This document shows positions 1 through 55,130 of a DNA stretch of 64,000 nt, one piece after another; position 1 is the stretch's first letter; the number at the start of each line of letters is the position of its first letter. The DNA lies in assembly GCA_002189035.1 (NCBI GenBank), contig NEEC01000004.1, positions 5,394,001 to 5,458,000 of the forward strand, written 5' to 3'. Made by a program: the position numbers and the translations under genes. The notes beneath the pieces are model-generated. The model made no database searches. It was given only the letters and a program-made list of their open reading frames with translations, and was not told the DNA's origin. The stretch is from Utricularia gibba. Its lineage: Eukaryota; Plantae; Magnoliophyta.

Positions 1-3000
1 GGTAAGAACAATTGGGATAACCGTGGTCGTGGTAGGGGACGTTGGTCCTATCGAGGGAGAGGTTCAGGGCGTTGGAATTCATCTAATGACGTGAAGGAGA
101 ATGCCTCCTTTCATCAGAACAGAGGACGTGGGAATTGGCGCGGAAGAGGTGGTCATGGCAAGCAAAATGGGGGCATTGATTCTAAGAAAAATAAGGCTAA
201 TGTAGAATGTTATACATGTCATAAGAAGGGCCATTACTCTTGGGAGTGTCATAATGCGGAAGAGCAGAATAATTTGCTTGTCGAACATACAGAGGAGACT
301 ACTGAATCACCTATTTTATTGATGGCTAAAAACGTGTCCAACGATGATATTGCAAGTTGGTACCTAGATTCTGGAGCCAGTAATCATATGACTGGGCACA
401 AGAGTTTGTTTTATACCCTTGAAGAAACGTATCGTGGCCTAGTTCATCTTGGAGATTCTACAAAGATCACTGTGAAGGGAAAAGGCGATGTTCTTTTTTC
501 TCTAACGGATGGCAGTCATAAATTAATTTCAGATGTTTGGTATGTTCCTGGTTTACGGTATAATATCTTGAGTCTTGGCCAGTTGTTGGAAAAAGGCTTT
601 ACAATGCTCTTAGAAAATCGACAGTTGCTGTTGATGGACATCAATAAGAAAGTCTTAGCATCCGTAAAGATGAAAGAAAACAGAATGTTTTCATTAGAGT
701 GTAACTCTGTTTTCCCAACATGTCTGAAAATATGTTATAGGCAAGAAGCTTGGACATGGCACCTACGGTTTGGACATATTAATTTCCAAAATTTGAGGAA
801 ACTTGGAAGCAACAAGATGGTCAAAGGTTTGCCTGTGATTTCACATCCAAACCAGATATGTGAAGGGTGTGTTCTTGGCAAACAAACTCGGACTGAAATT
901 CCAAAGGTGACATGGTCGCGTGCTACAAAACCTTTAGAGTTAATCCATGGAGACGTATGTGGACCGATCAAACCTCCCACGATCGGTCACAACAATTATT
1001 TTCTCCTGTTTGTTGATGATTTCAGCAGGAAAATGTGGATTTATTTCATGAAGAATAAATCGGAAGTCTATGGACTCTTCAAGGAATTTTTGACGATGGT
1101 TGAAAAACAGAGCGGCTTATCAGTCAAGTGCTTAAGAACAGATCGAGGAGGTGAATTTACTCCTAACAGTTTCATTGATTTTTGCAAGTCACTTGGGATA
1201 CACAAGTCTCTGACCGCAGCTAAGACACCACAACAAAACGGTGTTGTTGAGAGGAGGAATCGCGTCATTCTTGATATGGTGAGATGCCTTCTGAAAACCA
1301 AACAGATGCCCAAGGAGTTTTGGGGTGATGCTGCTGCCACATCAGTTTATATTTTGAATCGAACCCCATCCCGAAGTGTAGTGGGAATGACGCCGCAAGA
1401 AGCATGGAATGGAATTAAACCATCAGTTTCTCATATGAGAATTTTCGGATCCATTGCCTATGTACACCAACCGGATGATGAACGCACGAAACTGGACGAC
1501 AAAGCTCAAAAAATGGTGTTTATTGGCTATGATCAGACCTCAAAGACTTATCGCTTATTTGATCCTAAACTGAAAAAGGTTCGCTTGAGTAGGGATGTCA
1601 CTTTTGATGAATCTTCAAGCTGGGACTGGAAGTCTCTTTCAGACAATGATCCTTCATATAAGTCTTTTGATTTTAATTGGGAAATAGAAGGACGAGAGCC
1701 ATTGATGGATGATGCTGAAGCCATTAATCATCCTATCTCTCATGAAGAAGAAACAGAGTCTCCTGTGGATACGAGAGTTGAAAATCCATCAGTGGTGAAT
1801 AGAGGTCATAGATCAAGGAGACTTCCAAGCCGTTTTACTGATTTTGCCGTTGATCTACCGCCCTCGTTGTTACCCGAGACGAGCCATGATCTGTTACGTG
1901 AGGTTCAGAACTTTTCTCATTTCTGTCTTTTTGTTGAGACAGAGCCTCTGGACTTCTTTGAAGCTGAAAAATCCCCTGATTGGCGTACTGCAATGGATGA
2001 GGAAATCCATGCGATAGAGAAGAATCAAACTTGGAGTCTGGTGGAGAGGCCTTCTGATAAGACCGTCATAGGTGTAAAATGGGTCTATAAAGTGAAGCGG
2101 AAGGCAGATGGAAGTGTGGATCGATTGAAAGCAAGGTTGGTTGCCAAAGGGTACAAACAGAAAGCTGGGATTGATTATGATCAAGTATTTGCTCCAGTGG
2201 TGAGGATGGAGACAGTGAGGATTCTTCTTGCATTAGCAGCTCAACTTAAATGGTTTATTTGGCAGTTGGATGTTAAATCGGCTTTCTTGAATGGGATATT
2301 GGATGAAGAAGTGTTTGTGGAACAACCATTAGGATATATCAAGAAGGGAAATGAAGACAAAGTTTTGAAGTTACACAAATCCCTCTACGGGTTGAAACAA
2401 GCACCACGTGCTTGGAATCAGCGCATTGATGCATATCTCAAAGGCATGGAATTTATTCAATGTCCACATGAGCACTCCTTGTACATCCGACAGAAGAAGC
2501 TCACAGAAATGATGATCGTGTGTATCTATGTTGATGATTTATTAGTCACTGGAGGGAGTGAGTCTGAGATTGCAAAATTCAAGAAGAATATGAATGAAGA
2601 ATTCGAGATGACCGATGCTGGAAAAATGCATTTCTATTTGGGTATTGAAGTGAAGCAATCAGCCCAAGGAATTTTCATCACTCAAAAACGTATGGTGCAG
2701 AATTTGTTGGCAAAGTATCATATGGGTGACTGCAACTCGGTTGAGACCCCTTCAGAATTTAATCTGAAGTTGAGTTCCAATGATCCTTCGAAGGAAGTGG
2801 ATGTTACAGCCTTCAAAAGTTTAGTCGGCTCCTTACGGTATATAACCAGCACAAGGCCAGATATTTTATTTGCTGTAGGGTTAGTCTGCAGGTTTATGGA
2901 GAAACCCAGAGAGACCCATCTCAGAGCAGCCAAGCGGATCCTTCGATATCTGAAAGGAACATCAAATTTCGGGATATGGTATGGGGTTTCTGAACCTTTT

Positions 3001-3477
3001 GATCTTGTGGGTTTTAGTGACAGTGATTGGGCTGGAAATGTTGATGATTCCCGAAGTACAACTGGGTTTGCATTTTTTCTGGGTGAATCTGCAATTGTGT
3101 GGAATTCTAAGAAGCAACCCATCGTTACCTTGTCAACATGCGAGGCTGAGTACGTTGCTGCCAGTGCTTGTGTTTGTCACGCAATTTGGCTGAGGTATGT
3201 TCTTCAGAACCTCGGTTTGAAAGGTGAGAAGCCAACGGTGGTGCATATTGATAATAAATCCGCGATTGCTCTTGGTAAAAATCCTGTTTTCCATGCTCGT
3301 AGTAAGCATATTGGGACTCGGTTTCATTTCATTCGTGATTGTGTGAAAGATGGACAGATTGAATTGTGTTATGTTAAGAGTGATGATCAAATAGCAGATA
3401 TCTTCACTAAGCCTTTGAAGATTGGGGCTTTTCTGCGTTTGAGGAATCTGCTTGGAGTCAAGAAGCTTCTTGTTTAA
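1..3477 (+). CDS. Copia gag-pol polyprotein, frame open from base 1
   Basis: RG-rich gag, zinc knuckle CYTCHKKGHYSWEC, protease WYLDSGASNHMTG, WHLRFGH pre-integrase, integrase D,D,E (HGDVCGP/RTDRGGEF/NGVVERRN), RT YVDD, RNase H (FSDSDWAG...DIFTKPL). No stops or frameshifts. Confidence 0.97.
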   Translation, partial: GKNNWDNRGRGRGRWSYRGRGSGRWNSSNDVKENASFHQNRGRGNWRGRGGHGKQNGGIDSKKNKANVECYTCHKKGHYSWECHNAEEQNNLLVEHTEETTESPILLMAKNVSNDDIASWYLDSGASNHMTGHKSLFYTLEETYRGLVHLGDSTKITVKGKGDVLFSLTDGSHKLISDVWYVPGLRYNILSLGQLLEKGFTMLLENRQLLLMDINKKVLASVKMKENRMFSLECNSVFPTCLKICYRQEAWTWHLRFGHINFQNLRKLGSNKMVKGLPVISHPNQICEGCVLGKQTRTEIPKVTWSRATKPLELIHGDVCGPIKPPTIGHNNYFLLFVDDFSRKMWIYFMKNKSEVYGLFKEFLTMVEKQSGLSVKCLRTDRGGEFTPNSFIDFCKSLGIHKSLTAAKTPQQNGVVERRNRVILDMVRCLLKTKQMPKEFWGDAAATSVYILNRTPSRSVVGMTPQEAWNGIKPSVSHMRIFGSIAYVHQPDDERTKLDDKAQKMVFIGYDQTSKTYRLFDPKLKKVRLSRDVTFDESSSWDWKSLSDNDPSYKSFDFNWEIEGREPLMDDAEAINHPISHEEETESPVDTRVENPSVVNRGHRSRRLPSRFTDFAVDLPPSLLPETSHDLLREVQNFSHFCLFVETEPLDFFEAEKSPDWRTAMDEEIHAIEKNQTWSLVERPSDKTVIGVKWVYKVKRKADGSVDRLKARLVAKGYKQKAGIDYDQVFAPVVRMETVRILLALAAQLKWFIWQLDVKSAFLNGILDEEVFVEQPLGYIKKGNEDKVLKLHKSLYGLKQAPRAWNQRIDAYLKGMEFIQCPHEHSLYIRQKKLTEMMIVCIYVDDLLVTGGSESEIAKFKKNMNEEFEMTDAGKMHFYLGIEVKQSAQGIFITQKRMVQNLLAKYHMGDCNSVETPSEFNLKLSSNDPSKEVDVTAFKSLVGSLRYITSTRPDILFAVGLVCRFMEKPRETHLRAAKRILRYLKGTSNFGIWYGVSEPFDLVGFSDSDWAGNVDDSRSTTGFAFFLGESAIVWNSKKQPIVTLSTCEAEYVAASACVCHAIWLRYVLQNLGLKGEKPTVVHIDNKSAIALGKNPVFHARSKHIGTRFHFIRDCVKDGQIELCYVKSDDQIADIFTKPLKIGAFLRLRNLLGVKKLLV

Positions 3478-5761: not shown

Positions 5762-6154
5762 ATGGATTCCACGTCCAAGCTACTTCCAGTTCTTATTGTT
5801 CTCTGCCTGTTTGCATCATCCAACACCGCAACGGGCAGGAGGCTCGATATGAAGCCACTGTCTTCGTTGTCGTCTCTGGCAGTCCGACTGAAGTTGGAGG
5901 AAGTGGAGGGATCATCTAATTGTTGGGACTCTCTGCTGCAACTCCAGTCCTGCACTGCTGAAGTCCTGCTGTTTTTCCTCAATGGTGAGACATATCTAGG
6001 GCCGGGTTGCTGCCGGGCAATCAAAGTGATCGAGCACGAGTGCTGGCCGTCCATGCTTGGTTCCCTTGGCTACACATCGGAGGAAGGAGATGTCCTACTT
6101 GGCTACTGTGATGCTAGCTCTGCTGTGCCGCCGCCACCGCCTAAGACTCACTGA
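5762..6154 (+). CDS. EC1: Egg cell-secreted protein 1 (EC1-like, prolamin-like/DUF784)
   Basis: Intronless. Signal peptide, LAVRLK motif, six-Cys pattern CWDSLLQLQSCTAEVLLFFLNGETYLGPGCCRAI..ECWPSMLGSLGYT.EEGDVL.GYC. Confidence 0.93.
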   Translation: MDSTSKLLPVLIVLCLFASSNTATGRRLDMKPLSSLSSLAVRLKLEEVEGSSNCWDSLLQLQSCTAEVLLFFLNGETYLGPGCCRAIKVIEHECWPSMLGSLGYTSEEGDVLLGYCDASSAVPPPPPKTH

Positions 6155-6317: not shown

Positions 6318-9300
6318 TCACAGAACAGACATCAGGCTGCTTTTAAAACTACATATTCCCATGCGAGACTTGGGAGCAAGCTTGAGGTTGAAAATATCTT
6401 CAGAAGGAAGGTGGCCCGGTTCAATAAATCCGAGCAGCTTTGCAACAAGATATGCACTTCTTGTAGCATGATCGATGCTATCGGTTTTGCTCCATACCTG
6501 GTGAGCCAACTTTAGCCTTCTCACTTTGGTGTTGAGATCAATTCCCCACTCCAGAAAGAGGGACTCACGCTCTTGCTCTGAAAACTTCTTCGACATCTGA
6601 TGACTCAGCATTCGCCTCTCTTGACGTAGTGCACTGGCGCTGTTCTTCGTGGAAAATATATCAAATTACTGAGAGAAGGAGAAGCAAGTCTGATGACTAA
6701 CTTGCCTGGAAGAACGTGTTAGGCACCTTAGATTTGCTTTAGCTGTCACCCCACGAGGGGATTTATCTTCCAAGAACTTGATTCTCCTGATTTCCAGCTC
6801 CATGTATATGGCATCGGCAGGATCCCTCGGAAAAGCAAGAAAAAGTACGTTCTGTGTGCGAGTGATATATTGTAAACATGCCAAAGCTGAATTATTTCTC
6901 TCTGGAGTCTTTTGAACTCAATTGGCCAACTGGTAAGTCCTCTTAGCTCATCTTTGTTCGCAGATGCTTCCGTGACATTCAATGCTGTATGCTCACCCTC
7001 CTTCGATGAACCATCTTCTACCTGCACAAAAGATTCCAAGTAAGAGAAATGATACAAAAAGACAAGCAGGTTCTCTAGTTTCCTGTGTTGTGGTCATGAG
7101 CATTTAAAACCTTTGCATTTGGGGTGTTGATTTCACTGTCAAGTGTAATTTCTGGAAGCATTTGAAGGTACTTTCTTGATAAAATTTCCTCACAAGGAGC
7201 TTCTTCAGATACATGTATTTCAATTTGACCAATCTCAGTTTCTTTCTCAAATCTCTTGTATTCGCTCATTTTTAGAGGAGAAGCTGTTTCTCTGCTGATA
7301 CTTTCTGTGCAGCTTTTGCATCTGGTTAGCTTCAAGAATACACCATCCATCTTAAGCCGATGCCTTGAAGGCTGAATTTCCAGAGATGCAATATCAAGGT
7401 ATTGAATGGAGCTGTACTTTTTCCCATTCGGTGTACTGGTGCTCGATGAAGTTACACTTCCCTTCACTTCATCATCGTCCTTTAAGTCCGATTTCATCGA
7501 AGCAGAGTCTTTCATCGGAGGACTAAATTCAGGAAGGCTGTTGGTAACATGTGCTTCAGCATGAAATCTCGGAACTGAATATGAGAAACTAGATCCTGGG
7601 CGCCTTCATGGCTGATATAATGGAGCTCCCTGCACTCATCCATGGCGATGTGGTTGCTTTGCAGCTCAATCTCGTCACCAACAGGACCTGCACACTCATA
7701 GTCACTAGAATGTGGGCTGCTTATTAAAGCCCTTGGACCCGCAGTGATGCCTGAATGCCCCTCACTGTATAAAACTTTAGCAAAATGATCCTTGAGCTGC
7801 TCCTACAAAGCATAAAAGCCTCTAGATCCTGGATTTCGGAATCTGGAGATGCCTGCACTCTGATTTGTGGGTAGTCTCTGGGTTCCATCTGAAGAGATGA
7901 ATCCGCAAATTGATCAACAGAGGAGAATGGCTGGTACATGAATAGGATACGTATGAATGAATAATTACATACTTGCATTGCGGCTCTTGCATCTCCTTCC
8001 AGCATGTCCAGACATTCTTTGACTTGAGATTGCGCAATGTCTCTTTGCAGAATCAGAGCTTTGATCTCCTTCTCAAGCTGCATGGAATAAAATAAACGTC
8101 AAATAAACACTCTGATTGAAGAACACCCCACCACCTTCACTCAAAAAAAACTTGATTTCAAGAAACATTATGATCAGTTACCCTGTCGATTTGAGTGTCT
8201 TTCTTCTTGATTATAATGGCATTGCTCGACTGGCTGTTCCTTAGCTCACTTTCTAGCCTTGCAACCTCCTTCTTCAAACGCCTCACTACTGCCTTATCTT
8301 TGACAGTGACATTGACTTGCACGTTCGCTGACATTTTCATGGTGCATTGTGCAAAGAGAAGTGTGTCATGAGCTTCCTCGATGCAACTACGAGCAGGGCT
8401 CATTGTGCAGATGAGAGCTGTCCGAGCATTTTCTCTATGAGATATATGCAGAAACCCCATTAACACAGAATCTCTGGAAGGGAAGTGACTACAGTATTCC
8501 TTGCTGCAAGGAGATGTACATATAACCATTAACGACAAAAGCCACACAAATGCATTGTTTGTAAGGGAGGATACTACACTAGTTACCTCAGCATAGGTGT
8601 GTCTCCTTCTGAATGCGGCAAACCATGGTTCATTTGGGAGCAATCATCCACTGTCGTGTGCTCAATAGCAGCCAGATCAACGAAGTCCTGGGATGAGACT
8701 AAGTATTATAAGTATCAAAATCAGTAGCTCCTTAACTGTCATCCTACAATTGCTGTTACAAAGAAAGCATACCAAAGAAGCAGCAAGTGTACAGATGTTA
8801 TTTCCCTTGCCCCGGAGCACCTTTTCCGAGCTTTCAACTGTCTGCAAGATAAAGTGAATGAAATATGTATGTGCTGCAGCTGCAAGAAAATGATGTTGCG
8901 GGAGGTGGAGACAAGTACCAGTCTGATTATATGTTGGGACAGAGGGCTCGTTTCATTAACCAATGCTTCCCCATTCCATTTTTCCTCTAGAAAATCCGAG
9001 CAGCAATTGAAAACAGGGTTCTGTTGAAATTCTTCACTGCAACAGAGTTCGAAAAGACTTACCTAGAAAGCTTGAGACCAGCTGAGTTGCATGATCTCTC
9101 TCCCTCAGTGTTTCTTCTTTAAAAATCTCCACCATTTTTCCTTTCTGTATATTTGTTTTTCGTAGAGGTTATCAGTTGATGACAAAATCATCCTATCCAA
9201 CACGAATGAAAGAAGTAAAAATACCGCTGGATCCAATGCAGAGTCACATGATACCCCCAAGGCAGACAACTTCAGGACAAAGTCTCTTTCTGGATGCTGA

Positions 9301-10017
9301 AACATTAAGCATCATCAGAATACGCCAAATCAGTTCATGAACTGTATCATCATTCATTGAGACTCACCTTTTCTAGATAGTCATAAATATCAGCGATAGT
9401 ATACACAATAATCCCCTTCAAAGTGTAAGTCTTTCCGCTTCGTGGTTTCCCGTAGACGAAAATGTTTGCTGAAGAGGGTAAGAAGTAAGTCAGGATTTAG
9501 TGCAGCAACAGAGACAAAACAAGTGCCCTTACAGTTCACCCCATTGACGACTGAAAGGACAACATCCTTAACTCCTTGCTCGTAAACATCAAGTGTTGAG
9601 CAATCATCCCTAAACACCCTATCTGAGAAGAAGACGTCAGAATCAGTATCTTAAAATAGCACACCCTTATCGAAAGCAATTCCCTCTTCTAGTTTTTTAT
9701 CCATTCGTTTCATATGGGATCTTATGTTTCGGCACACACATCTGGAGACCCAAAGAGGTAAGCATCACAGTAGTATTGAAGAATCAAGCAATCGGTAAGA
9801 GAATTCCCTCACCAAATGTGTATGAAGTGGGATACATCGACTTCTCAGATGCAAGAAAACTGAAATTCTTGCAGAGTATAGTATTCTGATTGATGCATTC
9901 CCAATCCGAAACATCGTTGTTCGTAATTTCTTCATCGTTTAAGGGCCTTATCCTGACTGACACAAAAGCCTTTTCCTTGTTCCCTATCATCATCGCCCCT
10001 TCACTCTCCATGATCAT
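6318..10017 (-). CDS. Kinesin-7 (NACK/CENP-E-like) family protein with degenerate motor motifs and DUF3490-type tail; three apparent -1 frame breaks in the tail
   Basis: Exons by eye: 10017-9813, 9622-9533, 9468-9368, 9296-9225, 9144-9063, 8986-8919, 8841-8773, 8687-8587, 8503-8182, 8077-7973, 7888-~7111, ~7024-6706, 6639-6318. Diagnostic segments VSVRIRPLN, YPTSYTFDRVF, ARTALICTMSPARS, LKKEVARLESELR, EFKRLQREIIQLW, HRTYFFLLF, DAIYMELEIRR, WGIDLNTKVRRLKL. Confidence 0.88.
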
Positions 10018-20849: not shown

Positions 20850-22621
20850 CACTTCTTGATTCTGCATATCACTCCTTCTCCCCCGAAGAAACATCAGGGT
20901 TGCAATTCTTGCTCTCTGTTCATCTGCGAATTGTACCCTTATCCCCGACTGTTATCAGCAGTTGCAAGCGGGGGTTTGGTTTGACACAAAAGTTGCAGTA
21001 TAGTAAATCAGACCATGGAGTGTGCCCTAGTGGAGATCCTCTCCATTAGGGCAAGAGCTTAGAGTAGATGAATGGGAACCAAATGATTTCTAGTGCTGTA
21101 GTTTAGACATCTGCATTTGATCCTATTGTAAGAAAAAAAACAATATCATAGTGTTAGTGGGGTTCTCCTTCTAATTTATGTAGCATGTAGTTTAAAATGG
21201 ATAAGATTACACTCCTATTATTGTAATAACATAACTCTCTTTCAAATTTGAATCTCTTTCAAAAACTATGAAAAATAATTTTCAACTAGAAATTACTGGG
21301 AACATGTTATACTTTTGTAAACAAACGCTTCAAAATAATTTTATAAATCATATAATATTTCCTGGAAATATTTCTTATTTTTAACCCAATTTATGTTTTC
21401 ATAAGGAAAAAAAAGTTAAAATGTGATGAAATATTGATATGAAATTGTATTCTCAAGTCTGAATTATGAAATGGGCAAAAATGTAACTTCCCCACCTATC
21501 ACAGTACTTGCTGGCAGGGCGGCGGGGAGACCGCGGATGGGCAATTAATGGGACTCCACGGGCGTTCAAGTATTGGGTGGGAAGAAATGACTAAATCACC
21601 CTCCCCAGTTGGATACTATATTCAACTGCATAATTAAAAGCGTCATTACGAGAATGGTCCCCATGCAAAATCACTTAATCAGGAACATAATTGAGATCTC
21701 ATCTCCTTCACACAAGTCGTCTCCTTCTCCTTCTTCATTGTAATAATAATTAAATAATTCCCTGAATTATTGTTTTAACCCCAAACTTCCTATTTAATTG
21801 CCGCAAATTATGTTGTAGGTTGGAGTTACTGTTTATATTATTATTATTATTATTAAATTACTATTTTCAGTTACCTTTAAATATTGAATGTTCATATCAT
21901 TAGAAAAAATAGATTATTATAATATATACAGCTCCATTACTATCGCTTTCCGAACCCGGGGGTGAATTCAAACTCCATTGGTGTGGGTGACCCGACCCGG
22001 ATGGTGTGGGGCCGACACGTGAGATGGGAGTGGTAGTTGTTCATGATGAGGAGGAGGAAGAGTAACTAGGAGAGAGGTTTTGAAAGAAAAAAAAAAAGAG
22101 AGGAGTAAAGGATTTAAGCTTTGGAAGCAAAGGAACAGTTGCTTTTTGTAAGAACGATGGCGGCGGCGCAGAGCTCGTCTCTTTTAATGCTCCACACCTC
22201 CAATTCAAGAAGCTTCTGAGGGAAAAGAAAAGATGAAGCCCACTTTCGATCTCATTTAAATCCTCCCCTGGTTGCTGTTTCAAAGGAAAAGGAATCTGTT
22301 TCTTTTTCTGATTTTCAGAAACCGCGCGAGGTTGCGTTTGCTCTATTGCAGCCTGTACGGCTTCTCCTCATTCATTCGCAATTCAGAGCTTGTCTGTCTC
22401 CAACCCCATAATTCAAGAATCCCCGAAACAGTACCTGGAGGAAGAATTAAACGCCCGCATGCATTATTTTTCTTTTCTCCTCGGTTCATCATCTTCCCTC
22501 TCTTCTTTTCTACTTGTTTTGGTGGTTGTTTTGCAGCTAGAGTAGATTGTCGGTTCACAATTAATATCTACTAGAAACAAAAGCCCGATTTGAATTTCAA
22601 TTCAGAAATCCCAAAAAAGGG

Positions 22622-23983
22622 ATGGCCGGGTTTTTCTCGCTCTGCACCGGCGGAGGAGGAGCTGCGACCGCTGATCATGAGACCAGTGGCCATAACAACA
22701 ACACCAACAACAACGGAGAGATGAATCCGGAGAGCTGGTTTCTCTACAGGAATGAGGAGAATCCGTACAAAAGTTTCGAGCTTTGGCAACCGCAGCCGCA
22801 GCCGCAGCCTCAGGCTGAGAACTTCTTACAACGGGGTACTACTCTTCAGGATCTCTACGCTTCTGCTGGGGGGCTTGCAGTGGGTCCAGGAAGCGGGGGG
22901 TTCAGTATCTCCGGCGATCATTCTCCGAGATCGGGGTTTTTGATGATGAGGAGCAGCGGCGGGGTGGGATCAGTTGTCAGGATTGTGGGAATCAGGCGAA
23001 GAAGGATTGCTCGCACATGAGGTGTAGGACTTGTTGTAAGAGCAGAGGATTTCAGTGCTCCACCCATGTTAAGAGTACTTGGGTCCCGGCGGCGGTCCGA
23101 CGAGAGCGGCAACAGAGAATCGCGACGCTGCAGCAGCAGAATCAAAATCAAGAGCAGCGGCGAGAACGGGAGATCCCTCCCGGGGTTAAAGAGAACGGGA
23201 AAAGGCAAAGGGCTGAAGACACGAGCCCTGAGCATAACAACAACTCCCTTGTCTGCACTCGGATCGTTACATCCATGACAGGTGAATAAAAGGTTTCGCA
23301 TCTTGCACAGTAAAACCCTTTTGAAGCTTATTTGTTCTTCTTCTATCTTTGTCCTTTACACCAATGCTCGTTTTCTGTTCCTGACAAAAAAAAAATATAT
23401 TGTCAAGGATTGCACCCTATCTCCTTCCCTAGTTCCCAGTTACTACAACACTACTGGAGTTTTTTTTCCTTCCCTATCTTCAAACTCCATAGCTGAATCA
23501 GTTTCAGGAACCCTAGTGTCCATAGTTCATAGCCTTGTCTATGTGTCAGGGATTCAACTTCTCATGTTATTGCACACTTTCGTAGGGTTGGAGCTCGGGA
23601 CATTCCCATCGGAGGTAAGTTCGGAGGCCGTTTTCCGGTGCGTCCGTGTCACAACGTCCGATGACGGTGAAGATAAGTTAGGTTACCAAACAGCGGTTAA
23701 CATCTGTGGGCATGTCTTCAAGGGGATCCTGTACAATCAAGGAGTAGATAACCAGCAATACATGGCCGGTGATACTTCATCCGGCGGCGGGGGCAGTGTC
23801 ACCGCCAGCGGCGCTCAACAGCAACAACTCAATCTGATCACCGGAGGAGCCGGCACTGCTACATCTGACCCCAACACCTCGACCACACCCGGTACTTCCC
23901 CTTTCCTCGATCCTTCTCTATATCCACCTCCCATCAACAGCTTCATGGCTGGTAACCAATTCTTCCCGGCTTCAAGATCCTGA
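22622..23983 (+). CDS. SRS: SHI/STY (SRS) family transcription factor
   Basis: Exons 22622-23281 and 23586-23983. RING-like finger [40 protein letters not shown] and IXGH domain ([13 protein letters not shown]). Needs one extra G in GGGG 22961-22964. Confidence 0.93.
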
Positions 23984-41949: not shown

Positions 41950-43780
41950 TCATTCGAATCTGTACAGGCAGCTACCATCATCGCTTCTCGCGGTGGGATC
42001 GAAATTGGCGGCTACGGGATCGGTGCAACCTTCCGGCACCGGAACCTGGACCTGTTGAGCAGCCTTACCTACACCGGGAACCGCAAGAGGTTACCGTTTC
42101 CGTTGCTGCGTCGAAAATATGGAAGGCGGATAAGCTGAACTAACCGTAGAAGGTTCCCCTCTCGATGGCGTCCTTGTTGGCGTCTCCTAGAGCAGCTTCG
42201 CTCAGATACTGGTCGGCGAGCTGGACCCGTTTCACATTCTCCTGCTCCTGCACCAGCATGTTGCCGTATTCCAGAAGCTTCTCCAGCGTCATCTGCGGCT
42301 GATTAAATGTCGGCGGCCCTTCCCTCGAGTTCACGAGCTTTTTCCCGATGCTATCGACGCCGACCTCGGCGACCCATTTTCTCACCTCGTCGTCGTATAC
42401 TCTTGCTCTCAGGGCGCCGAAGAAATCTGTGAATTAACTGCTTTGTTATTCAATTGAAACGGCGGGCGAATCAATGGGAAGATGGGAAGAATGGGGTCAC
42501 CGATAGATTGGCCGGGGAAGGTGTCGACGAGGGTGATAATGGCGGATTCCGGAATATTGTCCGATCGGAAAATTCCCGTGCAAACTCCGATTCTGTCTTC
42601 TCTGGTAGGCGCCCAATAGAATTTCTCCATACGTCCGTCGCGGATGAGTGGAGCGTAGAGGGTGGAGAAATCGTTGCCGGTGACGATGATCGGGACCCTG
42701 GGATTCTCCTCCTTGTTGTACATTCCGGGGAGCTGCACGTTTGTCGGATTATCCGCTATATTCATCAGTGTAGCGTTCACCATCTGGTTATTCACCGTAT
42801 ACTGTGTTGTGCCGCCGAGGCGCCCCGCGCCGGCGTCGAGATCATTGATAAAGAGACAGCACATTTTCCCTTTCTTGATTATATCCGCCGCCTCCCTGTA
42901 CCTCTGCCTTATCAGCTTCGCCGGCTCGCCGGCGTTGCCGCTCTCCAATTCTCCAGCGCTCATCATGATTGGGCTAGAGGTCCCAGTTCAGTAACACAAC
43001 AAATTCAGTTCTTGAATTTCCAGAATTTGAATCAGAACAGCAGGAACGGAAGAGTGTACTCACTTGATCCCCATCTTGGAAAAAACAAGCTCACATTGGA
43101 ATGACTTTCCCTGTCCTTTGCCTCCCCAGATACCCAGAATGAGGGGGACCTGTCAAAAGAAAGGAGCATTACAATCCCAGAGAAGCTTTGGCACATCACT
43201 CCGCCCCCCATGACTGTAAAAACATCAACCTTGATGTTGGGCAAGCTCATGTAGTTCTTGGAAATATGAACAACGAGTTTATCCAAGAAAGCAGGGGCTA
43301 TGTAGTAACCACTCATCATGTTATCCATCTTGTATTCACGGAGACCTTGGCTGATGTACTCATAGGAGCTGAGGATGGCATCGTGAGTTCCCGTTCCCGT
43401 CGGCCCTTGAAAGATCGAATCCACCATGCCGTATCCTCTGCCGATATCCTGCTGATCATCAGAGATGTCGGTTACAAGCCCCTTCCATCTATCCGTATCC
43501 GTCTGCTTATCCTCATCGCCCTCCGGAACCGCCTCCGCCACCACCCTGAACCCGCCTGAGGCGCTTTTCGGCGCGCATCCGAAGCTCAGGTTCCTGAGAC
43601 TGCTACCCAGAAAGGATGATGGACTGCGCAAGGCTACCAAACCGGATCCATTTTGCTTCAACTACATCAAGATACTGCTGGTATGAAAGTCTGGTGACTT
43701 TTAAAGCAAAAGAAATAAAAGGACCGCAGCCTTACCGCTACCCAGTTGACAACTCCGATGGTTGAGACGGCGGTCGGCAT
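41950..43780 (-). CDS. RCA: Rubisco activase (alpha form with redox C-terminal extension)
   Basis: Exons 43780-43736, 43661-43230, 43149-43064, 42973-42501, 42426-42145, 42068-41950. Walker [35 protein letters not shown], extension [21 protein letters not shown]. Confidence 0.97.
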
Positions 43781-44044
43781 TCTATCTGGAATTGGGTTAT
43801 CCGATCCAGTTGGAAGATGAAGTAACAAGAAGGCAAGGTTTGTGGTGGATATAACCGTGGAACGCAGTGTGGCCACACAATACGGATTGAAAGGATATTG
43901 CACACTTTTCGGCCATATCCAATTGAGGACATGGAGTGGGCCCTGCTTAACAAAAAGATAGGGTGGGCCCAATCTCTTGTCGGAAGCCCACATCTGCAGT
44001 GAGGGCGCAGCCCAACACCACCCATTCGATTCTGAGCGCTCATT

Positions 44045-44054
44045 GTCACGTGAC
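44045..44054. promoter_or_regulatory. Palindromic G-box (GTCACGTGAC) in the RCA/JMJ divergent promoter
   Basis: CACGTG core about 265 bp upstream of the RCA ATG; G-boxes are typical of light-regulated promoters. Confidence 0.45.
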
Positions 44055-45038
44055 CGCCGTTCTTTAATTGACCGAAAGACGAGAAAGCAATTATCCGGAC
44101 AGCTGATGCCCATACACTGTTTCATCTGTCCCCACAGAAATGCGCTATTTTATTGTGATTAATTTTTTATTTAATTACATTAATTCCAGGGGTTAATCTT
44201 TTGTAGTTTTTTTTCAATGGAAAATTGATCTATTGCAGTTAGAAATTTGTAATGTTGGTTGGGGTTAGGGGAGGTGGTTTAGAGGAGGGGAGAAGGCGCA
44301 CGTGGTTTTGAGGGAAAACCATCGTAACTGTAACTGTGGGAATTTCGTGCGGAGAGATAATGGGAAACATGGGGTGCCCCTGGTTTTGGACGTTTTCTTA
44401 AGGGTAGCTAAAAAAGAAGTGTCTTGCTTTACTTACAGGATTGTTTGGTACTGCATGGTTAGAGATGGAAATTTTCTAGGGTGTGTGGTCTCTGGCCCTT
44501 ACATGATGTATAAGTGCTTAACGTGGGATTTTTCATGACTTGATCTGGATATTGGGCATCGTGTGTTTTGTTGTACGTTGCTTTGATACGTTTATTGTGA
44601 TGCTGTTGCCAAAAAGTCAAATTTGTGGGGGAAAAACTTAGGGTTCGTCTCTGATCTAGTAGTGTTCAGTGTTCACACCCTTTCTAAGCGTTGACCATTT
44701 GGTTATGATTTTCAGGATATCTGGATGCAGTGATTTACCAGCATTGAGAGGCAGAAGATCAATGACACTATCTTGATTGATTGTAGGTTTTCGAGTCAGT
44801 TTTTTGTATCGTAATTGTGGTTGATCTGCTTTCATACGCTATCTGATCTGCCTATGAAGTTGCTGATTCGTTTTACGAGTGTGTCTGTGACGTTTTTTAT
44901 GAGATGCATGGAGCAAAAATTTTATGTGTTTATTTTGTTGATCATTGGATAATTCCACCTGAGATCTCTTGTTATTGTTTTGGTTAAATTTGGCTCTTGA
45001 CACCTGTTATTTCTACCTTGGTTTTAATGTCAGTGAAG

Positions 45039-53810: not shown

Positions 53811-55130
53811 ATGCTCGCCATCACCCCCCATATCTACCACCGTGCGCCGCCGTTAACGAGGTTCAAGCCGCCCAAGGTATTCTACGTATCAGCCCTCATT
53901 ATTCCTCCTTCCTCCTCCTCCTCCGCGTCTACGCAGAAGCAACAGCAGCAACTATATCAGCCTTTCCGGCGGCCGGCTCAACCTCTGCCCACCCGCTTCC
54001 GCTCCCTCGACACCAATGAAAAGATCGAGATTCTCGCCAGTAGATTAGGATCCTGGTTCGATTACGCTCCTGTGATTCCGTTGCTTCTTCAAGAAGGATT
54101 CATTTCAACCGCAATCGAAGAATTGACCGGAATCCCATCCGTCGAGCAGAACCGACTCGTCGTCGCGGCTCAGGTGCGCGAATCTCTAATTGAATTGGTC
54201 GAAGACGAAATCGTTTCGTTTTTTGACTCCCCTGGGTCGCCTGATATTCTGTACGAAATCCGAATCCTCAACACACCACAGCGCGCCGCCGCCGCGCGCT
54301 TCATTATATCGAATGAGTTCGAAGGGAAGCAATCTGCTGAATTGGCAAAATCGATGAAAGATTTCCCGCGAAGGTATGGTGACAGAGGGTGGGAGTGCTT
54401 TGATGCGGATTTGCCAGGTGATTGCTTGGCGTTCATGTATTACAGACAGGCCCAGGAGTACAAATCGGCGTCTTCGCTGGAGCTTAGCAAGGCAGCTCTG
54501 GAGAAAGCGTTGAAGGTGGTAGGCAGCGACAGAGCAAGGGAGAAAGTGATGGACGATTTGCTGGGTAGAGATGGGGGAGGGACGAACGACTTTGGCTCGG
54601 CTGATTCAGTGAGAGTTCCGATAGTTAGAATGGCCTACGGAGAGGTTGCAGAATCAAGCATAGTGGTAGTTTTTCCAGTCTGCCGGGCGGAGATGAGAGA
54701 GCTTGAGGTTGAGGATGCACCGTGGGAATGTGGAATGGGAGGGGAGTTTGGTGTGGTACAGGCAGAGAAGGGGTGGAGCCGTTGGGTGGTGCTGCCTGGG
54801 TGGGCGCCAGTAGCCGACTTGAAGAGAGGGGGTGTAGCCATAGCCTTTCCAAATGCCAGAGGAGTTCTGCCATGGAGGAACAGGAAGAGAGGTTTGGGTG
54901 AGGAGATTCTAGTTGTAGCAGATAGGAGCAGGAAAGAAGTGGAACTGGATGATCAGTTTTACCTGGTGGTGAGCAGCGGCAGCGTTGCTGGAGAAGCTCT
55001 GAAAGTCGAGAGAGGAGCAAAACTGAAGGAAATGGGAGTCAAGGTGAGCCTTGGCACTGTAGTTCTGGTTGTTCGGCCACCAAGAGAGGAACTGGATGAA
55101 CAAATAAGCACCATTGAAGACTGGGAATGA
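53811..55130 (+). CDS. RAF1: Rubisco accumulation factor 1, chloroplastic
   Basis: Transit peptide, QQLYQPFRRP, YGDRGWECFD..LPGDCLAF, VPIVRMAYGEVAE, WVVLPGWAPV, LGTVVLVVRPP; intronless. Confidence 0.92.
   Translation: MLAITPHIYHRAPPLTRFKPPKVFYVSALIIPPSSSSSASTQKQQQQLYQPFRRPAQPLPTRFRSLDTNEKIEILASRLGSWFDYAPVIPLLLQEGFISTAIEELTGIPSVEQNRLVVAAQVRESLIELVEDEIVSFFDSPGSPDILYEIRILNTPQRAAAARFIISNEFEGKQSAELAKSMKDFPRRYGDRGWECFDADLPGDCLAFMYYRQAQEYKSASSLELSKAALEKALKVVGSDRAREKVMDDLLGRDGGGTNDFGSADSVRVPIVRMAYGEVAESSIVVVFPVCRAEMRELEVEDAPWECGMGGEFGVVQAEKGWSRWVVLPGWAPVADLKRGGVAIAFPNARGVLPWRNRKRGLGEEILVVADRSRKEVELDDQFYLVVSSGSVAGEALKVERGAKLKEMGVKVSLGTVVLVVRPPREELDEQISTIEDWE

Follow-up and report, generated by a model that had tools for sequence, protein, structure and literature searches.

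A kinesin-7 gene with a degenerate motor and a history of purifying selection in Utricularia gibba

We examined a 64,000-nucleotide (nt) stretch of the Utricularia gibba genome (assembly GCA_002189035.1, contig NEEC01000004.1, positions 5,394,001 to 5,458,000 of the forward strand; called here the window, in whose coordinates all positions are given) and focus on a kinesin-7 locus of 13 exons on its minus strand (6318–10017). Comparison with orthologues showed purifying selection on the whole gene, including its former motor domain, for nearly all of the time since the split from the Sesamum lineage. Over the same branch the constraint specific to kinesins was lost, with motor sites that are invariant in relatives changed at the same fraction as variable sites, so that for a long time a protein whose motor was dead was translated and kept under selection. 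On balance we favor the reading that this is a selection-maintained, dead-motor member of one Lamiales kinesin-7 clade (clade A), probably intact today, and that three frame breaks in its tail are errors of the assembly.

Descent and loss of the motor motifs

Searches with the last exon and then with the best full-length match led to Lamiales KIN7 proteins that NCBI names KIN-7E, KIN-7F, KIN-7G or KIN-7H, and BLASTP against a KIN7 of Sesamum alatum gave E = 1e-119 with 50% identity over 396 columns. Trees of 61 rows (quick) and 27 rows (careful) resolved two sister clades in the core Lamiales and placed the window gene in the first of them, clade A, with support of 100/100. Clade A also contains proteins of Sesamum, Paulownia, Erythranthe, Rehmannia, Orobanchaceae and Lamiaceae, among which the window gene lies nearest to Sesamum (93/85), and forcing it into the sister clade (clade B) was rejected by the approximately unbiased test (p = 1e-7). 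The gene belongs to the kinesin superfamily and to the plant kinesin-7 family by descent, as shown by homology, by its position in the tree and by the presence of both a DUF3490 domain and a neck coiled coil. From its sequence it appears to be the Lentibulariaceae orthologue of the core-Lamiales clade-A kinesin-7, one of the group in which motor, neck coiled coil and DUF3490 tail occur together. No second KIN7 copy was found within the window.

The 13 exons match those of the orthologues in length and phase, and splice sites are usable at all 12 introns. The first-pass annotation, made from the letters of the window alone, had described nine motor exons joined in frame through GT-AG introns without a stop, and this is what we find: every donor is GT, every acceptor is AG, and the joined exons give 1110 nt, or 370 codons, with no stop codon. 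Relative to the orthologues the motor carries five indels (−3, −42, +3, −24 and −15 nt), all of them in frame. Exon 1 (10017–9813, start codon 10017–10015) encodes the motor N-terminus and is 62–64% identical to exon 1 of Sesamum and Paulownia; exon 2 (9622–9533) has 90 nt, as in all relatives. Exon 3 (9468–9368) holds the P-loop. Exon 4 (9296–9225) measures 72 nt, compared with 114 nt in all relatives with a mapped gene structure, and in the process has lost 14 codons in frame from the segment that contains EIYNE, RDLL and LRLLDD; LSALGVSCDSALDPA (9225–9269) stands in its place, so that the replacement and 14-residue shortening reported in the first pass are both borne out. Exon 5 (9144–9063) is followed by exon 6 (8986–8919), which holds switch I, and by exon 7 (8841–8773), which is one codon longer than in relatives (69 vs 66 nt). 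Exon 8 (8687–8587; 101 vs 125 nt) holds switch II and a rewritten loop 11 (L11) and helix α4 from which eight codons are missing, a shortening that, like the survival of the bare Walker pattern in the P-loop, had not been mentioned in the first pass. Exon 9 (8503–8182; 322 vs 337 nt) holds loop 12 (L12), the motor C-terminus and the neck coiled coil, in which ARLESELR is conserved. Taken alone, exon 9 matches the Pfam Kinesin model with E = 7.8e-7 and 28.8 bits, just below the gathering score of 29.3.

We compared the motif states with those of 31 aligned relatives and of 121 KIN7 motors with canonical motifs. The family states assumed in the first pass (GQTSSGKT, N..SSRSH, DLAGSER and HxxYRDSKLT) are borne out by the alignments, in which the last reads HIPYRDSKLT. 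In the window gene the P-loop GQTSSGKT has become GKPRSGKT within YGKPRSGKT, which leaves the bare Walker skeleton GxxxxGKT; the motif was read correctly in the first pass but extends over 9428–9454, three nucleotides beyond the end given there (9451). Switch I reads NETSPLSQH and has lost the Arg and Ser of SSRSH (now SPLSQ), and L12 reads HFPSRDSVL (HIPYRDSKLT to HFPSRDSVLM), each exactly where the first pass had placed it (8931–8957 and 8461–8487). Switch II reads DLAAIEH, as had been noted, and spans 8658–8678 instead of 8661–8678; its Gly is gone and its Asp and Glu are kept. L11 is eight residues shorter than in the family, and α4 has been exchanged for a proline-containing stretch. The signatures of an active motor (P-loop GQTxxGKT, switch I NxxSSRSH, switch II DLAGSE) are therefore absent, as are its microtubule-binding elements L11-α4-L12-α5.

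The extent of the change is clear from the columns of the alignment. At positions that are at least 98% invariant in the 121 canonical motors, 48 of 100 are changed and eight more are deleted; at positions conserved to 90–98% the count is 35 of 94, and at variable positions 81 of 161. Selection was estimated from the exact coding sequences of nine relatives, mapped onto their loci, under a home-made codon model (GY94-type, F3x4, branch-specific ω, fixed topology, 9–10 taxa; not PAML). On the window branch ω, the ratio dN/dS, is 0.23 at sites invariant in the canonical relatives, where the background is ~0.001, and 0.30 at variable sites.

These numbers bear on the possibility that the protein is still a working motor in a fast-evolving lineage and that its long branch records only the substitution rate of the bladderwort family. 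Such a reading would accommodate the remaining Walker skeleton and the switch II Asp and Glu, and also the ω of the motor as a whole (0.25), which is not significantly unlike that of canonical clade A (0.20, p = 0.41). It is nevertheless highly improbable in view of the changes at nearly invariant positions and the ω at those positions, together with the loss of the switch I Arg, the switch II Gly, the eight residues of L11, α4, L12 and the 14 residues around EIYNE/RDLL; the site-class test rejects it. A salt bridge between the switch I Arg and the switch II Glu, and the switch II Gly itself, are needed for kinesin ATPase activity and motility. Because the switch I Arg and Ser, the switch II Gly, L11/α4 and L12 are replaced or deleted, the former motor is predicted to be unable to act as a canonical kinesin ATPase or as a canonical microtubule binder.

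Selection and the state of the tail

For the motor, ω is 0.16–0.17 in clade B, 0.20 in canonical clade A, 0.27–0.29 in Lamiaceae clade A, 0.23 in Striga clade A and 0.25–0.26 on the window branch. The corresponding values for the tail are 0.25, 0.52, 0.32–0.35, 0.16 and 0.31. On the window branch ω = 1 is rejected in both motor and tail (twice the log-likelihood difference ~71, p ~3e-17), and the neck together with exon 10 is conserved (ω = 0.18). Both parts of the gene, compared with orthologues, thus lie well below the dN/dS near 1 that the first pass had named as the mark of a true pseudogene. A model-free estimate (NG86) against Sesamum and Paulownia gave pS of 0.59–0.67 and pN of 0.24–0.25. 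The terminal branch of the window gene is 1.0–1.1 changes per site long, compared with a median of 0.06–0.16, and with dS ~1.0–1.1 and dN ~0.3 this great length is mostly a lineage rate effect.

The degenerate motifs, the two deletions in the motor core, the three frame breaks and the long terminal branch are also what might be expected of a redundant duplicate that has long drifted neutrally and whose motor frame is open by chance. Under simulated drift, a residue change of 41–48% needs a divergence (d) of ~0.25–0.3, at which the motor stayed free of stops in 0 of 2000 runs (a probability below 1/2000); even at d = 0.05 it did so in only 13%. The invariant sites, had they drifted freely, would have needed at least about one quarter of the branch to reach their present state, a span that cannot be squared with a stop-free frame unless selection was purging nonsense mutations. 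Neutrality is moreover rejected at p of the order of 1e-17 in motor and tail alike, pS exceeds pN 2.4- to 2.7-fold, none of the five motor indels shifts the frame and no splice site has been lost. The values of ω, the in-frame indels, the kept splice sites and the drift simulation therefore indicate that selection protected the frame while the residues changed. Codon models, raw pS/pN and the stop-free simulation reject a neutral pseudogene, and we give a long-decayed one next to no credence. Purifying selection after the loss of catalytic residues, one of the marks of a retained pseudoenzyme, is found here. The first-pass annotation had preferred a retained dead gene to a decayed pseudogene; this preference is supported in part, in that the long selection is upheld and three 1-nt gaps in the tail make the intactness of the gene today no more than probable.

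The tail exons were located by tblastn with three relatives and their junctions were checked by hand. Exon 10 (8077–7973) encodes the coiled coil LEKEIKALILQRDIAQSQVK and has 105 nt, as in relatives. Exon 11 (7888–7111) encodes the variable stalk and contains two single-base deficits; exon 12 (7021–6706) encodes the first part of DUF3490 and contains one. Exon 13 (6639–6318) encodes the rest of DUF3490, with the stop codon (6320–6318) at the conserved position. The Pfam DUF3490 model matches both tail exons, with E = 1.3e-28 for exon 13 and 4.1e-12 for the other.

The three breaks noticed in the first pass are real in this assembly; at each, a single base is missing. The first (fs1), at 7792/7791, reads TCA|AG|GAT, and in orthologues this GAT is preceded by GAG or GGG. 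The second, at 7598/7597, reads GCC|CA|GGA and lies at a C run. The third, at 6824/6823, reads GGG|-AT, with GGGG read as GGG, so that an invariant Asp codon lacks its G. There are exactly three breaks, all −1; two are clearly adjacent to G/C runs, and A/T runs, which are more frequent, have none. When the frames are followed through them the tail is free of stops over 1515 nt, and the whole gene has no nonsense codon in 2625 nt. Splicing out of a 56-nt cryptic intron was considered as a rescue of fs1 and rejected, since the intron would be too short and the codons that it would skip are conserved.

A comparable lesion occurs elsewhere in the window. In a conserved SHI/STY gene (22620–23980, plus strand) the N-terminus (MAGFFSL...MMRSSGG) and the DUF702 domain (Pfam, 1.6e-34) are in different frames; the switch falls inside GGGG at 22961–22964, and one added G joins both parts. 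The cytochrome P450, Rubisco activase, AHL/PCC, Raf1, AAA ATPase, RING and GH10 genes and a Copia element are unbroken. Introns account for the apparent breaks in GPAT, RCA, DUF702 (at a second site) and AHL/PCC, and a scan of the whole window for pairs of open reading frames (ORFs) that merge by ±1 base at homopolymers was too noisy.

The same history of selection on a dead motor could have ended recently: if the three 1-nt deletions are real, the locus is either a young pseudogene or the source of a truncated product of ~460 residues, comprising the former motor and neck and lacking DUF3490. This is a possibility of real weight, although we hold it to be the less probable outcome. The breaks themselves are in the assembly, and fs1 is not clearly in a homopolymer. 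They number three in 2.6 kb of kinesin, and the remaining coding stretches of the window have one in 14.2 kb (Fisher p = 0.013, a test that is biased in that the comparison stretches were picked as open frames), which is an excess if all breaks are errors. The donor of the last intron (6705–6704) is a further blemish: it is GT in Sesamum and Paulownia and GC here, within the strong context AG|GCAAGT. Other clade-A copies also show signs of damage (a 1-nt deletion in Paulownia and several fragmentary models in Sesamum), and three frameshifts without a stop suit a neutral phase of d ~0.01. The pattern of the lesions, their absence from A/T runs, the lack of any nonsense substitution and the like −1 break in a G run of the SHI/STY gene speak against it. 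Furthermore, the tail segments downstream of each break have ω of 0.22–0.38, each below 1, which confines any death of the gene to the last ~1–5% of the branch. We consider it somewhat the better bet that the assembly consensus is wrong at the tail breaks; if it is not, the death of the gene was very recent and the neutral phase short, with d about 0.01 and at most ~0.05.

An intact, selection-maintained dead-motor gene accordingly remains the reading that we prefer, the gene being probably intact because the breaks are most likely consensus errors. Besides the excess of breaks, the position of fs1 and the GC donor, several observations weigh against it. The value of dS is near saturation, which makes ω imprecise. 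As no relative from Lentibulariaceae turned up (the tail exon had no match in its length band in a set of 5.8 billion proteins, and a metagenome scan gave none), the branch cannot be subdivided, and early strong constraint followed by late relaxation is indistinguishable from a steady ω of ~0.25. We found no transcript or protein of the locus, and exact look-ups of three neighboring proteins were also empty. The genes that flank the clade-A loci of Sesamum and Paulownia (B-box, EamA) do not occur in the window, a lack of shared flanks that neither helps nor refutes orthology.

The selected function most plausibly lies in the coiled coil of neck and stalk together with the DUF3490 tail, with the former motor presumably kept as a constrained, non-enzymatic N-terminal domain that is folded or at least tolerated. 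The protein may dimerize with, sequester or scaffold a canonical KIN7, its cargo, a kinase or other partners. The first pass had drawn an analogy with motor-less tails that act in a dominant-negative manner, which would be a reasonable model for such a protein.

Clade A in other Lamiales

Degenerate motifs recur in clade A. The clade-A proteins of Salvia, Perilla, Phlomoides, Orobanche, Castilleja and Striga are changed at 10–20 of 108 invariant motor columns, and those of Sesamum, Paulownia and Erythranthe at one to three of the 108. The substitutions are specific to lineages: P-loops read GE[TR]SSGKT, GQKSSGKT or GQTSTGKT; switch I reads NELSPQSH, NELGTQSH or SSGTH; switch II reads DLAASEY, DL[AF]GTQR (including DLAGTQR) or DLAGNER; and L12 reads PYGDSKLT or PYKNSKLT. 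Twelve annotated clade-A proteins of Lamiaceae and Orobanchaceae are degenerate and full-length (P0185, P0189, P0194, P0221, P0230, P0231, P0240, P0164, P0171, P0186, P0203 and P0206). The window gene resembles the 'KIN-7J' of Salvia miltiorrhiza (P0194), a Perilla-like transcript (P0189) and the proteins of Striga hermonthica (P0206) and Orobanche (P0171) in belonging to the same clade, in its degenerate motifs and in an ω below 1; unlike the window gene, the Lamiaceae and Orobanchaceae members have neither core deletions nor frame breaks.

These genes, too, are under selection. Between Salvia and Perilla the dN/dS of the motor is 0.26 in clade A vs 0.12 for the clade-B pair at equal dS, and ω = 1 is rejected for Lamiaceae clade A (p = 1e-20) and for Striga (p = 1e-18). 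A degenerate Lamiaceae member is present as an uninterrupted ORF of 949 codons on a 3066-nt Logan contig, which represents a spliced mRNA, as the genomic genes carry 11–12 introns. The clade-B paralogues of Lamiaceae and Orobanchaceae have canonical motifs.

Because the Sesamum, Paulownia and Erythranthe proteins are canonical and the substitutions differ between families, the motifs appear to have been lost at least three times independently. It may be that, following a duplication in the core Lamiales, clade A turned into a pseudo-kinesin under selection on three or more separate occasions (Lamiaceae, the parasitic Orobanchaceae and Lentibulariaceae), while its sister clade B kept all motifs; we see the case for this proposition as evenly balanced. 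If it is true, clade A would depend for its function on the coiled coil and DUF3490 tail, without a need for motility, and its proteins might serve as regulatory or heterodimer partners of a canonical KIN7 or as kinase scaffolds. The window gene would then be the most extreme case.

Some clade-A gene models elsewhere deserve separate mention. In Paulownia fortunei (GCA_019321725.1, Pfo_018628, L001:13616-13645) an annotated 'intron' of 29 nt masks a 1-nt deletion in motor exon 9, where TTN-PK.. replaces TTNAQVNV; either the assembly is wrong at this point or the Paulownia copy carries a real lesion. Several Sesamum clade-A models are truncated or split, with the motor missing or separated (P0002, P0003, P0154, P0172 and P0192), and full-length models exist in S. 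alatum, S. calycinum and S. radiatum. The truncated models point to problems of annotation or to real damage in some species.

Neighboring genes and relation to other kinesins

The kinesin gene lies tail to tail with a small Cys-rich ORF of 130 residues (5762–6154, plus strand), which lies ~165 nt from the kinesin stop codon, has a signal-peptide-like beginning and may encode an EC1/prolamin-like secreted protein. Farther out, an uninterrupted ORF of 1128 residues (91–3477, plus strand) encodes a Copia-type polyprotein with gag-pre-integrase, rve and RVT_2 domains, apparently of a young retrotransposon. The Rubisco activase gene (42143–44149, minus strand) encodes a protein whose aligned stretches are highly identical to activases of solved structure (4w5w and 3t15). 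Less than 12 kb away lies a second gene for Rubisco maintenance, that of Rubisco accumulation factor 1 (53811–55130, plus strand), which has a single exon and all three Pfam domains.

The kinesins NACK1 and NACK2 act at the phragmoplast by activating the NPK1/ANP mitogen-activated protein kinase kinase kinase (MAPKKK) cascade (PMC12804373). The window gene shares with these DUF3490-containing plant kinesin-7 proteins (NACK1/HINKEL and NACK2/TETRASPORE) the motor homology, the neck coiled coil, a long variable stalk and a C-terminal DUF3490. It differs from them in that every motif for nucleotide sensing or microtubule binding is replaced and two segments of the core are deleted. Its nearest named relatives are the KIN-7E/F/G/H proteins of Sesamum and Paulownia, and its placement is within the Lamiales KIN7 tree, where it need not be a NACK orthologue or NACK-like in function.

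Kinesin relatives without catalysis include KIF26A/B, Costal2, the yeast proteins Vik1/Cik1 and the plant proteins KAC1/2. The window gene resembles them in combining a kinesin fold with a predicted lack of ATPase competence, a combination that in those proteins is kept for binding or scaffolding. They belong to unrelated families, and we know of none that is a plant kinesin-7 or that recurs within one paralogue clade. An inactive KIN7 is already a concept in annotation, as in the label 'putative inactive kinesin-like protein KIN-7B' carried by a protein of Primulina tabacum (P0198). That protein differs from the window gene: it falls on a Gesneriaceae branch and has an unrelated-looking N-terminus in place of the motor, with canonical switch II and L12, a pattern that looks like a model or frameshift problem. 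In the literature searched we found no paper on a dead-motor kinesin-7 clade or gene in plants. The window gene may accordingly be described as a plant kinesin-7 by descent that, judged from its sequence, lacks the features of an active motor and has the selective history of a pseudoenzyme.

Two lessons for annotation follow. Frame breaks in this assembly cannot be read as pseudogenization without a check of the reads, and great branch length in this family reflects mainly the substitution rate of the lineage, not decay. The recurrent pattern across the clade is more interesting than the single locus. If clade A, while staying under selection, tolerates or favors the death of its motor in three families, it offers a natural experiment for learning what stalk and DUF3490 tail do when motility is absent, and the pattern points to species with genomes and transformation systems (Salvia, Perilla and Striga).

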